This document shows positions 1,592 to 40,745 of a stretch of DNA of 64,000 nt, in pieces. A program made the position numbers and the translations under genes. Under the pieces are notes generated by a model. It ran no database searches. It was not told where the DNA came from and was given only the letters and a program-made list of their open reading frames with translations. Each line of letters opens with the position of its first letter. Within the stretch, counting starts at the first letter, position 1. The stretch lies in sequence record MW760841.1. One strand, 5' to 3'.

Positions 1592-2017
1592 ATGTTTAGT
1601 ATCTTCAAAAAACGCGCTAACCGTGCTATGGCCGACATCAAAAAATTCGACAAACGCGATCTGGCAGAAGCCGTTGTTAACGCAGCGTACCTGATTGCCT
1701 ACGCCGATGGCGAACTGGAATCTTCTGAGAAATCCAAAATCGACCAGGTACTGCGTGCTAACCCTGTGCTGTCTAACTTCCAGGGTGAACTGAACCAGAT
1801 CGCGGGCACTATCATCGCCCAGCTGGAAGCAGACATCGATATCGGTCGTCGTGCTGCTCTGCGTCAGATTGCTGATGTGAAAGGCGACCAGCGCGAATGT
1901 GAAGACGTCCTGGACGTTGCAGTGGCTATCGCTCGTGCTGATGGTGAAATCGAACCGGCCGAAGTCAAAATGCTGGAGCAAATCGCCGAAGCTCTTGGCC
2001 TGCGCTACGACGCGTAA
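1592..2017 (+). CDS. terB: TerB-family (tellurite-resistance/stress-response) protein
   Basis: Motifs AYLIAYADGELESSEK and AVAIARADGEIEPAEVKMLEQIAEALGL; ATG 1592 after AAGGA. Confidence 0.85.
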   Translation: MFSIFKKRANRAMADIKKFDKRDLAEAVVNAAYLIAYADGELESSEKSKIDQVLRANPVLSNFQGELNQIAGTIIAQLEADIDIGRRAALRQIADVKGDQRECEDVLDVAVAIARADGEIEPAEVKMLEQIAEALGLRYDA

Positions 2018-2020
2018 TCC

Positions 2021-2200
2021 ATGAAGCTGAAAACCAAGTTATACATCGCGGCCGCACTGATTCTGATGCTGCTTGGCAACTTCATAGGCCGAGCGTTTAC
2101 GTTCATCGCCTATGCAGCTGTAATCAGCTTAGTAGCATACTTCGTGTGGCCACTCATTAAGACCTACGCTGCCAAGGCAAAAGCCAAGGTCAAGTCTTAG
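2021..2200 (+). CDS. 59-aa membrane protein with about two TM segments (absent from the ORF track)
   Basis: Translated by hand: MKLKTKLYIAAALILMLLGNFIGRAFTFIAYAAVISLVAYFVWPLIKTYAAKAKAKVKS*. Confidence 0.75.
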   Translation: MKLKTKLYIAAALILMLLGNFIGRAFTFIAYAAVISLVAYFVWPLIKTYAAKAKAKVKS

Positions 2201-2210
2201 TGAGTTTAGT

Positions 2211-2230
2211 GGGGAGGTCGTTCCCTCCCC
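2211..2230 (+). other. Intergenic GC hairpin (stabiliser or weak terminator)
   Basis: GGGGAGG-TCGTTC-CCTCCCC with no T-run. Confidence 0.4.
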
Positions 2231-2266
2231 ATTGTTCCATTCTCTTAAACAATAACAGGTACAAGC

Positions 2267-3100
2267 ATGAGAAAGGTTCTGATTGGTTTATTCGCTGCGC
2301 TGAGCTTCTCAGCGATGGCAGGGCAGGATGTTGTCATTACCACTGGGCAACAAGGACTGACGTACAACTCAGTCTACGGCACCAACCTGGCAGGGGCGCT
2401 GAATGAGTTCGGCAATACTGCACGCGTTATCCCTTCGAAGGGGTCTTCGGACAACCTCGATAAAGTTTCCAGCGGTGAAGCCCAACTTGGGTTCACGCAA
2501 GCTGATGCCTTCCAGTATTGGCGTCAGCAACATCCGAACGAAGCACAGAAGGTTGACATCGTTGGTCAGCTGGGACGTGAATGCGTTTGGGTAGCCGTCA
2601 AGAAAGGCGGTAAGATTAGCGAAGCCAAAGACCTGACCAACGGCGCGAAGATTGCCGTCGGTGACCCGGACTCTGGTTCCTACGCCAGCTGGCAATACCT
2701 CCAGCTTTTGGTAAAAGAATACTCGAAAGCGGAAACCTACGCGAAGGGTGGCATTCGTTCTCTGTCCAAAGTGGCGACAGGGGAATACGATGCGTTCCTG
2801 TGGGTATCGGCTCCGGGCAAAAGTAATAAATTCCTCGATGCCGTCAATCAAGACAGTTCTGGCTTGGAACTGATTGACATGAGCACTTGGAGCGTTAACG
2901 ACAAACTGCCTAACGGCCAGTCTGTTTACACCAAAGAGAAAGTAGAGACCAACTCTGCGGCATTCTTCGGTGCGAAGGTTGACGTCCCATGCACCACTAC
3001 GCTGGTTGTGGCTAACACAGACGCGGGTGACGACATGCTCGAAACGGTATCGTCTATCCTCCTCAAGAACACTTCTCGTGTGATGGGGACGAAACAATAA
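2267..3100 (+). CDS. TAXI-family TRAP solute-binding protein (secreted)
   Basis: Signal peptide MRKVLIGLFAALSFSAMA; ITTGQQGLTY, SKGSSDNL, LGFTQAD and VGDPDSGS motifs typical of TAXI receptors. Confidence 0.8.
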   Translation: MRKVLIGLFAALSFSAMAGQDVVITTGQQGLTYNSVYGTNLAGALNEFGNTARVIPSKGSSDNLDKVSSGEAQLGFTQADAFQYWRQQHPNEAQKVDIVGQLGRECVWVAVKKGGKISEAKDLTNGAKIAVGDPDSGSYASWQYLQLLVKEYSKAETYAKGGIRSLSKVATGEYDAFLWVSAPGKSNKFLDAVNQDSSGLELIDMSTWSVNDKLPNGQSVYTKEKVETNSAAFFGAKVDVPCTTTLVVANTDAGDDMLETVSSILLKNTSRVMGTKQ

Positions 3101-3868
3101 CTGGCTGAGGGTTGATTCTGACCCACGACCTGTACCAACCTACTTGAACGGGCTGGTATCCCGTTTGATGCGGTAATAGCAGAGACCCAGTGCACACCCG
3201 TAAGTCGCTGGTAGCCGGTTACACAAAGCACTATCCGTTAGGGTAGGTAACTGACCGTACATGAACTTACTCGATGAGAGAGCCCTTATATATGCAAGGA
3301 CTTAGAGAGTTGGTGCGTGGGCTCATTCGTTCCATACGGGACATCTGGGCTTTCGCTCGACATTGGTCACTTGCTCATTACTGGCTTACAGGCGGTGGGA
3401 AGTCCCGTGAGGGTTCCCGATACAGACATCTTCCTGCGTGGAATTATATGTCCTTATCGGACAGGCCAGCACCGGACCGCTAACCCGACCTGCTAACGCC
3501 TGTAATACTACAATCTGATGTCCATTAATGGGATTAAGTTCCCAGTGTGATAGAGCGACTGTGTGTCGCTGGAGATAACCCCCCGTCGTGGACTAGGTTA
3601 TCCCAAAGGTAATGTGAAAGCGGGTGGTGCTTGGAGAGGTTCAGACCGGGGGATACTCTGGCTCAACCGAAGAAGTCCATCACCCGCATTCTCACTTCAA
3701 AAGTCCTTTTACAGATTTATCCCTATATATGCGAAAGATAACAAAGCGAATTCTAACGAATGAGTTTTCTTTGTTATATGTCGGGGAATCTCGTTGTTGC
3801 TGCACAGGGCGTTGCGTTGCGTACGCTTGCCGGTGTGTAGGAGTTGCGAGGTGCCCTGGCACCTATAC
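3101..3868 (+). ncRNA. Candidate large structured non-coding RNA (unassigned)
   Basis: No convincing ORF; nested long-range helices (e.g. 3339-3345/3517-3523, 3386-3394/3497-3505, 3620-3629/3678-3687) and a GTGA tetraloop; strand and ends are inferred. Confidence 0.55.
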
Positions 3869-3950
3869 GGGGGAGTGGCGGAGCGGTCGAACGCGGCAGA
3901 CTGTAAATCTGTTATCCCACACGGTGGTTCAAATCCATCCTCCCCCACCA
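3869..3950 (+). tRNA. tRNA-Tyr(GTA)
   Basis: Acceptor GGGGGAG/CTCCCCC, loop CTGTAAA, CCA; short 10-nt variable region. Confidence 0.9.
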
Positions 3951-3954
3951 CTTT

Positions 3955-4029
3955 AGGGGTATAGCCAAGCGGTAAGGCCCAGGGCTTTGATCCCTGTATG
4001 CCCTGGTTCAAATCCAGGTGCCCCTTCCA
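3955..4029 (+). tRNA. tRNA-Gln(TTG)
   Basis: Loop CTTTGAT, Gln-type D arm, CCA; A1-U72 and U73. Confidence 0.9.
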
Positions 4030-16225: not shown

Positions 16226-16717
16226 ATGCCTAGGGATAAAGATATAAAGACGATGCTTGCGTACACTAAGCGCGAAGATGCGGAGGAGCGAGGTATCCGT
16301 GATTTCAGGATGCCACAAGCGAACCGCGTCCATCAGCCTGGTGGGAAAGGTACCACGGTGGTGGTTGAGTTGAGTCCGAACTCTGGGCTCGCTAAACGTT
16401 TAATGGAAGAAGCGAAGTACCGTTATCTGGTGGTACTGGACTATACCGATCTCGAATCCATCGATTACGAGCAAGGTTATCCGACGCGAGAGGAAGCCTT
16501 AGCGGTTTACCTGCGTACGCTGCCTGACATTAAGCACCGGGTGGTATTGTCTGAAGATTGTCGTGGCCCAGCGCTCAATGCGCCTAACCGTTTAGTGGAA
16601 GTGGACTTCCTGGTTATCACCCCAGAAGGGAATTACCAGAACATCCGCTTTACGGATGAGAATATCGGGCATGTCTGCACTACGTTGAACATTGCGTACT
16701 ACCAGACAAAAAAATAA
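16226..16717 (+). CDS. Hypothetical protein
   Basis: 163-aa ORF, RBS GGAGG, ends at a terminator. Confidence 0.75.
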   Translation: MPRDKDIKTMLAYTKREDAEERGIRDFRMPQANRVHQPGGKGTTVVVELSPNSGLAKRLMEEAKYRYLVVLDYTDLESIDYEQGYPTREEALAVYLRTLPDIKHRVVLSEDCRGPALNAPNRLVEVDFLVITPEGNYQNIRFTDENIGHVCTTLNIAYYQTKK

Positions 16718-37729: not shown

Positions 37730-38338
37730 ATGTCACGTCGTAAGAAACCCGCTGGTTACAATCCTAAGCAAGCTGCCCGTGATGCAATCACCCGCAACAT
37801 GCGCGATATCAACAACGTGGAAGAAATCTTTCGCGGTGAATCTTTAATCCTGTCTGACCGACTGGATACCGAAGCCAAAGCTCTGGAGCTGATTGAGTCT
37901 CCTGAGCTGCGCGATTACCTGACCGGGCACTTCAACCGCACGAAGAATGGCTTCGTCGGTTTGATGGCCGAGTTTAAGCAAAAACTCGCCGCTATCCGTA
38001 CTCCCGCTGATACCGTGGCGTGTCAGTGGATGGATAACCTGAAAGCGAACAAGTGGGATGCCATTAAAGACGCTTACATCCTGGCTGACCTGGAACTGAC
38101 GGGTGCATCCACCGACGTTATCTTCCTCGGCCAGGAATCAACCGCTGCGGCGATTGAGCTGTTCTCCCAGTACGCCTCCCGTACCGGCGCGATGCACCGT
38201 GCGATGCGTATGGGTCTGACCATTCCACAGGTCATCCAGTTCATGGAAGCGGTGGACGAGAACACTACTCCTGCTGCTGACGACTCCGTGGTGGCAGAAG
38301 CCGTAGCTGAGACCAAAGAGGAAGCTGCACATGTCTGA
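37730..38338 (+). CDS. Conserved hypothetical protein
   Basis: 202 aa, RBS AAGGA. Confidence 0.8.
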   Translation: MSRRKKPAGYNPKQAARDAITRNMRDINNVEEIFRGESLILSDRLDTEAKALELIESPELRDYLTGHFNRTKNGFVGLMAEFKQKLAAIRTPADTVACQWMDNLKANKWDAIKDAYILADLELTGASTDVIFLGQESTAAAIELFSQYASRTGAMHRAMRMGLTIPQVIQFMEAVDENTTPAADDSVVAEAVAETKEEAAHV

Positions 38339-40304
38339 ACAGTTTGATCAACGTCCGCAAATGGTGCGGCGTGATGCCCCAGAGGTTACGGAGACGAAGC
38401 CCGTCTTCCAACCTCTGCCTGAGGAGATGATAGCATCCCTGTCAAAAGGGGATGCTATCATGAAGATGCTTCATCTCAATCCCACTTTTTCTTTTGCCGA
38501 AGCCAGTGGTGTTTACGACGATTGGGCTGCTAAACAGCAGGCACCGGTTATTGAGCCAGCGAAAGAAGAAGTGCAACCTGCGGCTGCGGTCTTCGCGCAA
38601 GCGGAGAATGTCGCGGAAGTGAAGCCGGAGAACGTTGCCGCTGCACCGATTACCCCGGTACAGGAACCTGTGAAACAGGCTATCCCGGAAACTATCCGTA
38701 CGCTGCATCAGCACGTTGACCCGGCACCGGTCGCTCCAGTAACATCGGCTCCTGCTGCCCCATTGCCTGAGTCAAACCGTGAAGCACAGCCGACCCTCCC
38801 GGAGACTGTGCCTCATCAAATCAACTTCGGCGCTCACCCTAATCGTGAAGAAATTAGCGAGATGGGGAAAGACGACCCGCATCGTATCTTCACCCAGACC
38901 GATGAACTGGTCGGGACTTTCCGTCCGTTGGCGGCGGAAGAAGAAGCTGCACGTTTCTTCTCGGGTATTCGTCGTAATACCAAAGGTCAGCCAATGTTCG
39001 CCAGCGAAGCCGAAGCGAACAAGTATCAGGTGCTCTCCACTGTCCTGGAACTGACCCCACCGGTGAACGGTAACGGTAAAGCGGTGTTTGATACTGCTCT
39101 GGAACGTAGCGATACGACCTGGACGCAGGGGATGACTCTACCGACCGGCAAACTGGCAGGGCCAGCACAAGACCGTGGTGCCGATGCGAAAGGTGCGCGT
39201 GCCGCATTACGTCGTCGTCGTCAGTCCGGTTCACCGATTTCGGTGTGGCTGCCATCAACCGGTATCTACGTCGGCTTCCGTGCTCCGCTGGAGCGTGAGA
39301 TGTGTGACTTCGATATCCGTCTGGCTACCGAAACCGCAACGCTCGGGATGCAGACCTATGGCCTGCTGCTGTCCTCGATGTCCGGTGTGTATCTGCGTCA
39401 CATGGTTGAACACTCGCTGAACTTTGCGATTGAAACGACCTTTGACTGTCAGGGCAACGACATCAAGACCGCACTGATCGATATCGTCGACCTCGACGAT
39501 TACTGGCTGCTGATTCTCGGCCCAATCATGGCGAAGTTCCCAACCGGGATTCCGTGGAAGCTGGTGTGTGCCAAAGACGACTGTGGTCACGACCGCGATG
39601 TGCGTCTGAACCTGGCGCGTTGTATCCGTATGGCCGATGGCTTGTTCACCGACCTGCACCGTGCAATGAACCAGCGTCAGCGTGGTAAGACCAACCAGAT
39701 TATCGGCCCTGAAGATTATCTGGCTTACCGCAACGACCTGCCGCACAATCCGGCCAGCGTCTTTAAGAATGAAGAAGCGGGACTCACCATCACCTTCGGT
39801 CGCTCCACTATCGGGGATTACCTCGACAGCACCGACCGTTGGCTGGAAGAGATTAACCGTGCCGCCACCGATGCGTTGTCTTCCAACGCCAGCGACTACG
39901 AACGCACCAACTACATCAAGTTGACTGCCGAAGTGCGTCGTCTGACTCGTCACGCTCACCACGTTAAGTCCATTACCGTGGAAGAAGAAGTGAAGGGTGA
40001 AACGGTAGAGACCGTGGAAACCGATCCGGCGAAGATTGTCGAGATTCTGGAAGACATGTCCTCTGACCGTATTTACGTACTGGCCTTTGAGAACGCCCTG
40101 GCGCGTTACAATGACCTGTCACGTATGGCGGTGCTCGGTTACATGGGTCACGCGTGTCCGGCGTGCCAGACGAAGGAAGGCGAAGAAGACGGTCCGTTCC
40201 GTGGTATTGTTACCATCTCTCCGGACAGGGTTTTTTTCGCGCTATCTCGTGTGGTGTCCGAGATACAGAAAGTCTTTTTACAACAGTTCGGAAATATTGG
40301 CTAG
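38331..40304 (+). CDS. T4 gp26-like baseplate hub/tail assembly chaperone domain with a long Pro/Ala-rich N-terminal extension
   Basis: WLPSTGIYVGFRAPLERE, C...DCG...V.LNL, CPAC and a near-terminal VFF resemble the gp26-family pattern as I recall it. Confidence 0.65.
   Translation: MSEQFDQRPQMVRRDAPEVTETKPVFQPLPEEMIASLSKGDAIMKMLHLNPTFSFAEASGVYDDWAAKQQAPVIEPAKEEVQPAAAVFAQAENVAEVKPENVAAAPITPVQEPVKQAIPETIRTLHQHVDPAPVAPVTSAPAAPLPESNREAQPTLPETVPHQINFGAHPNREEISEMGKDDPHRIFTQTDELVGTFRPLAAEEEAARFFSGIRRNTKGQPMFASEAEANKYQVLSTVLELTPPVNGNGKAVFDTALERSDTTWTQGMTLPTGKLAGPAQDRGADAKGARAALRRRRQSGSPISVWLPSTGIYVGFRAPLEREMCDFDIRLATETATLGMQTYGLLLSSMSGVYLRHMVEHSLNFAIETTFDCQGNDIKTALIDIVDLDDYWLLILGPIMAKFPTGIPWKLVCAKDDCGHDRDVRLNLARCIRMADGLFTDLHRAMNQRQRGKTNQIIGPEDYLAYRNDLPHNPASVFKNEEAGLTITFGRSTIGDYLDSTDRWLEEINRAATDALSSNASDYERTNYIKLTAEVRRLTRHAHHVKSITVEEEVKGETVETVETDPAKIVEILEDMSSDRIYVLAFENALARYNDLSRMAVLGYMGHACPACQTKEGEEDGPFRGIVTISPDRVFFALSRVVSEIQKVFLQQFGNIG
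40232..40265 (+). promoter_or_regulatory. Candidate -1 ribosomal frameshift signal
   Basis: In-frame slippery T TTT TTC (40232-40238) followed by hairpin TATCTCG/CGAGATA (40243-40265). Confidence 0.65.
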
Positions 40305-40711
40305 ATGCCGATGATATTCCGTCCGGCGCTATCATTAACGCACTGAAGCTTGATACCACCTCGCTGTTTAAACAGCGCAGTAGCCGACCCATCACGTACC
40401 AGGAGGCACACGATGAGTTGCTGTCCACGTACGACGATGTGATGGGGTTGGAGACGGGTGAGAACAACATCAGTCTGTCTGACTTCGAAAACCCGTTAAT
40501 GGGTTCGTTGTACGAAATCTGGATGTCAACTTATACGCGGGAGAAGATTTGGGACGTGTTCCATATCGACTTCGATGACTTCCTGGAACGACCCAGATGG
40601 AAGATAATGAAAATGCTGGAAGTGGCGAAGCGACGCAACGCCGAGTTAAATCGGATGCAGAACAACGTCATCCCGGAAGATTGGGAAAAGCAACTGACTG
40701 GAAAGATATAA
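40238..40711 (+). CDS. T4 gp51-like chaperone extension, probably reached by -1 frameshift from 38331
   Basis: -1 frame ORF (track 40154..40711) with no good RBS/start; FHIDFDDFLERPRWKIMKMLE pattern. Confidence 0.6.
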   Translation, partial: RAISCGVRDTESLFTTVRKYWLDADDIPSGAIINALKLDTTSLFKQRSSRPITYQEAHDELLSTYDDVMGLETGENNISLSDFENPLMGSLYEIWMSTYTREKIWDVFHIDFDDFLERPRWKIMKMLEVAKRRNAELNRMQNNVIPEDWEKQLTGKI

Positions 40712-40715
40712 AGAA

Positions 40716-40745
40716 CGGGGCTTCGGCCCCTTTCTTTTTTTTTTG
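40716..40745 (+). terminator. Intrinsic terminator
   Basis: GGGGC-TTCG-GCCCC plus T-run. Confidence 0.8.

Follow-up and report, generated by a model that had tools for sequence, protein, structure and literature searches.

The question raised by this locus is whether two adjacent hypothetical genes of a jumbo phage are separate genes or one gene that is decoded in two ways. The window analyzed is a stretch of 64,000 nucleotides (nt) from sequence record MW760841.1, and window coordinates are those of the record. Erwinia phages pEa_SNUABM_8 and pEa_SNUABM_4 match the region with 100% identity. Phage pEa_SNUABM_8 belongs to the genus Machinavirus in the family Chimalliviridae, in agreement with the assignment to a Chimallivirus made from the sequence in a preliminary description of this DNA. 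At the locus, two hypothetical proteins are annotated in GenBank, one of 657 amino acids (38331 to 40304) and one of 97 amino acids (40418 to 40711). The central claim of the preliminary description, that the two open reading frames (ORFs) are joined by a programmed -1 frameshift, is strongly supported by the comparative evidence presented here, and the gene at 38331 to 40304 is probably decoded in two ways by programmed -1 ribosomal frameshifting, giving one protein of 657 amino acids and one of approximately 793 amino acids.

The frame of the 657-amino-acid ORF at the site reads GAC AGG GTT TTT TTC GCG, which places the heptamer T_TTT_TTC (40232 to 40238) in the correct phase, as had been described. 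No stop interrupts the -1 frame from 40115, through the heptamer, until the one that ends at 40711. Recomputation gave predicted products of 657 amino acids and of 636 plus 157, or 793, amino acids, and both these sizes and the open -1 frame to 40711 agree with those initially reported. The long open frames of the window contain 51 in-phase X_XXY_YYZ heptamers, after which the -1 frame runs for a median of 13 codons before it closes. The heptamer at 40232 to 40238 is the extreme of the 51, with 159 open codons (the runner-up has 71), and an open -1 frame of this length is beyond chance expectation. An A7 in-phase heptamer at 16708 to 16714 was considered as a second recoding site and rejected, as it lies two codons before a stop that is followed by a hairpin, an arrangement that corresponds to a gene end and terminator.

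In the proposed mechanism, most ribosomes would read TTT TTC (40233 to 40238) in the zero frame, add 21 residues, and stop at 40304, producing the 657-amino-acid protein. A fraction would slip one base back on T_TTT_TTC, each of the two tRNA-Phe now pairing with TTT, and would continue in the -1 frame to 40711, a helical domain of 157 residues thereby replacing the zero-frame tail in a protein of approximately 793 amino acids. The two proteins would share 636 residues, and the efficiency of the slip would set their ratio. We infer that both forms are needed, as we do the roles suggested for them below.

A total of 41 related loci were examined, which included the SPN3US-like genera, phiKZ, 201phi2-1, RAY, AH06, SA002, Moabite, PhiEaH1, and SPLA10, among others, as well as Burkholderia phage FLC8, Bacillus phage AgentSmith, and 16 metagenomic contigs from IMG/VR. 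An in-phase T_TTT_TTN was found at the homologous position, that of a conserved "FF," in 38 of the 41 loci, including all 16 contigs and every phage from phiKZ to AgentSmith in this list. The T-run, whose conservation in relatives of SPN3US and phiKZ had been suggested as a check, is thus conserved there and also reaches phages of Burkholderia and Bacillus; judged from these comparisons, the frameshift appears to be much more widespread than the preliminary description supposed, extending beyond the relatives of SPN3US. The length of the run among the 38 canonical loci ranges from 6 to 9 nt, with two contigs having exactly T6, the bare heptamer. Nine amino acids (V, T, A, G, I, L, S, Y, and H) are found at the residue preceding "FF," but the third base of its codon is T in 38 of 38 canonical loci. 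Were this position free, such invariance would be very unlikely to arise by chance, although the estimate is a rough one as the lineages are not independent.

The arrangement on either side of the heptamer is also conserved. A homologous domain of 153 to 183 codons lies in the -1 frame after the site in 40 of the 41 loci, the exception being the record of phage SEGD1; the extension has this length wherever it was measured from the heptamer, and one contig runs off its end. In SPN3US, Asesino, CR5, Kwan, and others, separate tblastn searches with the two pieces gave upstream and downstream matches that overlap by 4 nt, which is again the -1 geometry. The zero-frame tail is between 11 and 45 codons long across all loci. 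In 11 SPN3US-like phages from several genera the heptamer is the same, the tail is exactly 21 codons, and the position of the stop is identical. Across four Machinavirus genomes the segment from approximately 40180 to 40310 is nearly invariant in nucleotides, compared with flanks that are 75 to 85% identical. Both the heptamer and the -1 relation are kept down to approximately 20% protein identity. In many phages a stop in the -1 frame lies 1 to 6 codons upstream of the heptamer; the shift is therefore pinned to the heptamer.

Comparison of the downstream parts showed that the -1 extension is homologous to phiKZ gp76.4, RAY gp266, 201phi2-1 gp135, and SPN3US gp40. The extensions are mutually homologous (hmmsearch E values of 1e-12 to 1e-57) and share PHROGs 12109, 7580, and 13274, and in distant phages the -1 frame aligns as protein from the heptamer onward. 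The downstream domain is present in 67 phage records, and every such record examined, SEGD1 excepted, annotates it as a separate small gene, as with phiKZ gp77 and gp76.4, SPN3US gp39 and gp40, and RAY gp267 and gp266.

Synonymous (pS) and nonsynonymous (pN) divergences were obtained from Nei-Gojobori counts over the 11 SPN3US-like phages. For the 37 codons of the -1 frame that follow the zero-frame stop and precede the annotated start, pS was 0.68 and pN was 0.21, a ratio of 0.31, while the annotated downstream part is looser, with a ratio of 0.47. As these 37 codons are under purifying constraint, the stretch appears to be translated in the -1 frame, even though it has no start codon ahead of it. 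Synonymous divergence ranged from 0.57 to 0.69 along the gene and was 0.35 in the last 15 codons up to the end of the heptamer and 0.37 in the overlap. Its halving over approximately 15 codons upstream of the heptamer (40180 to 40231) could be due to an unrecognized upstream element, because dual coding cannot explain the dip in phages whose -1 frame is closed there.

These data bear on whether the locus comprises two ordinary genes, the downstream ORF being expressed from an internal start at TTG 40418, perhaps coupled to termination of the upstream gene, and the T-run being incidental. This is how nearly every GenBank record is annotated, and the TTG is preceded by AGGAGG 11 nt upstream; the earlier statement that the downstream ORF has no good ribosome-binding site or start near the upstream stop therefore needs correcting, as this TTG is a possible start. 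Neither the start nor the Shine-Dalgarno (SD)-like AGGAGG is conserved. The AGGAGG, which falls within conserved codons, is absent from pEa_SNUABM_43, and the annotated starts vary among phages, with candidates scattered or absent; in phiKZ, AgentSmith, and one contig, the -1 frame is devoid of ATG, GTG, and TTG over its first 75 codons. Two independent genes would also leave unexplained the purifying selection over the 37 codons before the TTG, the protein-level alignment from the heptamer onward in distant phages, and the retention of the heptamer and the -1 relation at such low protein identity. This explanation is accordingly quite improbable, and the annotated 97-amino-acid product, pEaSNUABM8_00057, is probably merely the 3' portion of the -1 extension.

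Several observations weigh against programmed frameshifting at the heptamer. It is conceivable that some independent initiation takes place at TTG 40418 in this phage. The remaining 3 of the 41 loci, those of BRkr and phiLBG22 (PhiPA3-like) and of Noxifer, which represent two lineages, have N_TTT_TTC with a run of only T5 (ATA TTT TTC or GAG TTT TTC), and hence an A or G at the first position of the heptamer. No conserved stimulator was found, neither a structure nor an SD-like element. Furthermore, SEGD1 (KU726251.1), which is of the SPN3US species, has a single 795-amino-acid ORF, gp042, across both parts (1607 to 3994), and the metagenomic fragment P0126 passes into the -1 frame early. In BRkr, phiLBG22, and Noxifer the long -1 ORF is retained, without an SD-preceded start.

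The SEGD1 ORF, together with the error-prone nature of homopolymers, is what could be cited for a sequencing error or a decaying gene, in which one ORF has been broken by a miscounted homopolymer or a recent mutation. The T-run of SEGD1 is intact, however, and its difference from SPN3US is confined to a short stretch just upstream of the run. In P0126, too, the T-run is intact and the deviation falls in a short segment ahead of it; this fragment also loses a conserved CPxC motif. Both were therefore rejected as natural fusions; the difference in SEGD1 is probably a local sequence or assembly difference, and that in P0126 is taken to be the same. No clean in-frame fusion of the two parts was found among 1.84 billion representative proteins. 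The SPN3US-like upstream gene forms 36 protein clusters, all of 389 to 706 amino acids and none of the approximately 790 amino acids that a fusion would have. The profile of the downstream domain matched 76 clusters among the 1.84 billion, nearly all of them gene calls of 66 to 186 amino acids, and the few longer matches, of which P0126 was examined, align in several short stretches. The same frame relation occurs in 40 of the 41 loci, which were sequenced independently, and the metagenomic member sequences that share it number in the hundreds. In the 11 SPN3US-like phages both the length of the zero-frame tail and its stop are conserved. An error or a decaying gene can be given almost no credence. 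In several Salmonella phage SPFM records, odd-sized gene calls (proteins P0034 to P0036, P0060, and P0061) match only short pieces of the two parts, over more than one stretch, which suggests that these assemblies are garbled at the locus.

A conserved stimulator was sought in several ways. The preliminary description had pointed to a hairpin after the heptamer, and its two 7-nt arms, which begin 4 nt past the heptamer, do pair perfectly around a loop of 9 nt (arms at 40243 to 40249 and 40259 to 40265); a function of this hairpin as a stimulator is not borne out. It is broken in 3 of 11 close relatives (Kwan, pEa_SNUABM_11, and Caitlin), with no compensatory changes, so that the suggested check of its conservation gave neither conservation nor covariation. 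Local folding was no better than that of shuffled sequences (z = -0.75), and downstream folding across 21 diverse loci gave z-scores from -1.1 to +1.0, with nothing consistent. No conserved SD-like element was found upstream of the heptamer in the 11 SPN3US-like phages, and no Rfam family matched at the site. As no structure, SD-like element, or Rfam match was found, the conserved element is the in-phase U-run.

That the T-run is the only universally conserved element, with no stimulatory RNA structure or SD-like sequence beside it, would also be expected if the slip were made during transcription, with the polymerase stuttering on the run and adding one extra U to some transcripts to give the same long protein. 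Some lineages have T8 to T9, more than a heptamer needs, and these phages use their own multisubunit RNA polymerases. Homopolymers of at least 7 nt in the window are, moreover, almost limited to the edges of ORFs, while the run at 40231 to 40237 lies in a long coding frame, close to its 3' end. Against transcriptional slippage, the run is exactly T6 in two contigs and no longer than T5 in three phages, and polymerases are not known to slip efficiently on runs as short as these. It is also always phased as two Phe codons which, with the preceding third base, form X_XXY_YYZ, and in no case is it in the one phase that would forbid tandem tRNA slippage, a constraint that is irrelevant to a polymerase. 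Since T5 and T6 lineages exist and the phase is constant, tandem slippage on the ribosome is favored; we infer that the slip occurs there rather than in transcription, for which the likelihood appears low.

The features of the locus are collected in Table 1. In the GenBank record the neighboring genes encode a helicase, small hypothetical proteins, and RNA polymerase subunits. The 3' end of the upstream neighbor, pEaSNUABM8_00055, reaches 8 nt into the 657-amino-acid ORF, and a small gene is found at its position in each clade examined, which by synteny is the position of phiKZ gp78. No promoter-like or terminator-like signal was found between the upstream and downstream parts. The hairpin and T-run that follow the -1 stop (40717 to 40745) are terminator-like in either orientation.

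TABLE 1 Coordinates of features at the frameshift locus of MW760841.1
Feature	Position	Strand	Basis
Upstream neighbor pEaSNUABM8_00055, 202 amino acids, PHROG 8045 (unknown function)	37730..38338	+	PHROG match
Zero-frame gene pEaSNUABM8_00056, 657 amino acids, phiKZ gp77/RAY gp267 family, core gene cg18	38331..40304	+	
Conserved domain of ~350 amino acids, ends at slippery site	39189..40238	+	
Slippery heptamer T_TTT_TTC, inside T7 run 40231-40237	40232..40238	+	
-1 frame extension, 157 codons plus stop, helical C-terminal domain, PHROG 7580/12109	40238..40711	+	
Zero-frame tail, 21 codons plus TAG stop	40239..40304	+	
7-bp hairpin with 9-nt loop	40243..40265	+	
GenBank coding sequence pEaSNUABM8_00057, 97 amino acids, TTG start	40418..40711	+	
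GC-rich terminator-like hairpin, then T-run, right after -1 frame stop	40717..40745	+	

With regard to identity, the 657-amino-acid protein matched PHROG 8054 at 1.5e-292 and PHROG 4585 at 8.3e-60, and tblastn with the upstream domain reached PHIKZ077 of phiKZ and a total of 190 phage records. The gene is a member of the cg18/phiKZ gp77 family (PHROG 4585/8054) and lies in a conserved neighborhood. Among the core genes of the Chimalliviridae, cg18 is listed as a hypothetical protein, and the downstream ORF is not listed (Prichard et al., PMC10299810 supplement). A domain of approximately 350 amino acids is common to phiKZ, RAY, Moabite, FLC8, and AgentSmith; it contains two Cys pairs and ends in a near-invariant "FF," encoded by the slippery site. 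The N-terminal region of approximately 290 amino acids (38331 to 39200) is rich in Pro, Ala, and Glu, is predicted to be disordered, and occurs in the SPN3US-like clade only. Relatives of the phiKZ type are approximately 120 amino acids shorter. The gene was considered as the nuclear import factor gp69 (PicA/Imp1) of phiKZ and rejected, as its phiKZ homologue is PHIKZ077. Mentions of "gp77" in the literature refer to the gene numbering of other phages.

The preliminary description had likened the upstream part to T4 gp26 and the downstream part to T4 gp51. Searches of Pfam and of PDB sequences and folds revealed no function for either part, and NCBIfam gave no match, which is uninformative as it lacks a model of gp26, T4 gp26 itself matching nothing there. 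The AlphaFold models are of low confidence, with predicted local distance difference test (pLDDT) values of 57.8 and 55.7, and fold searches made with them carry little weight. Using Foldseek against BFVD, the upstream model (pLDDT 57.8) matched one "T4-like baseplate hub assembly protein" (E value of 4.7e-4, template modeling score of 0.35), and the model of the -1 domain matched only small proteins of jumbo phages. Two GenBank records label the upstream gene a T4 gp26-like hub assembly protein. PF12322 gave no match at E values up to 1 to the protein of the window or to seven distant relatives, compared with 8.8e-64 for T4 gp26 itself.

Profile-profile comparison of both parts by hhalign, a check of the kind suggested earlier, gave low probabilities (T4 sequences were taken from NC_000866, the accession shown in PMC2993671). 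The family alignment gave a probability of 15% against T4 gp26 alone and of 0.8% against 17 gp26 relatives, and looser and global settings still gave no relationship to gp26. For the -1 domain against T4 gp51 the probability was 0.1%, and no match to PHROG 634 or 150 was found among six -1 frame domains. The likeness of the upstream part to T4 gp26 is therefore weak, coming down to one low-confidence structural match, and is unproven, while a gp51-like downstream part found no support. A role of cg18 as a baseplate-hub assembly chaperone is weakly suggested.

Searches of the literature on frameshifting in phiKZ, SPN3US, the Chimalliviridae, and jumbo phages, which covered papers outside subscription-only access, revealed no description of this site. 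This and the records examined agree with the earlier impression that such a frameshift is not annotated in these phages. Phages of the phiKZ-like, nucleus-forming group are under intensive study, and most of the 72 core genes of nucleus-forming phages are without known function (PMC10299810). If the frameshift is real, the annotation of the locus would be corrected across the GenBank records of the family, and a long isoform would be added that proteomic and structural work has not sought. A fixed stoichiometry of the two forms, typical of assembly chaperones, would also be implied. As a rare frameshift kept over a range down to approximately 20% protein identity with the slippery run alone conserved, the locus would offer a natural test case for stimulator-free slippage on a U-run.

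The arrangement can be compared with known systems. In dnaX of Escherichia coli, a homopolymer-type heptamer in a long gene gives two proteins, tau and gamma, in a fixed ratio. In dnaX the shifted product is the shorter one, and the slip depends on an SD-like element upstream and on a strong hairpin downstream, whereas in cg18 the shifted product would be the longer one, and searches for stimulators of this kind gave none. The tail assembly chaperones of lambda (G/GT) and P2 (E/E+E') are reportedly also made by frameshifting (Xu, Hendrix, and Duda 2004, reference 38 of PMC9024508). As proposed for cg18, ribosomes slip by -1 toward the 3' end of the gene and make a minor, C-terminally extended protein that shares the N-terminal part with the major product; the place of the slip is kept among distant phages. 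In P2 the slippery sequence is likewise a T-run, T_TTT_TTG. These systems differ in that the cg18 gene does not lie between tail tube and tape-measure genes, having helicase and RNA polymerase genes around it, and in that the proteins here are approximately five times larger. No Pfam match to tail chaperone families was found, and the PHROG families matched are all of unknown function. The tail chaperone of the lambda G/GT type put forward in the preliminary description is therefore an analogy only, with no tape-measure neighbor and no match to a tail chaperone family.

A further comparison is with T4 gp26 and gp51, both of which are called baseplate hub assembly chaperones (PMC3004832, Table 2). 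Both match PF12322 over approximately 200 residues (NC_000866, 2803 to 4229) and are therefore paralogues, with gp51 carrying an extra C-terminal part (PHROG 634). T4 gp26 resembles the upstream protein in having two Cys pairs and a C-terminal "FF," and the T4 proteins form a short and a long pair, as proposed for cg18, a likeness that is one of analogy and not evidence of homology. In T4 the pair comes from two adjacent, divergently transcribed genes, 26 and 51, with no frameshift. It is possible, if rather doubtful, that the slip is ancient and essentially universal, with all Chimalliviridae and the related Bacillus and Burkholderia jumbo phages making short and long forms of cg18 at a fixed ratio without a stimulator, as a one-gene counterpart of the paralogous T4 gp26 and gp51. 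Should both the universality and the gp26/gp51 reading be true, the comparison with T4 would provide a first functional handle on cg18, and phiKZ gp77 and gp76.4 would be one protein.

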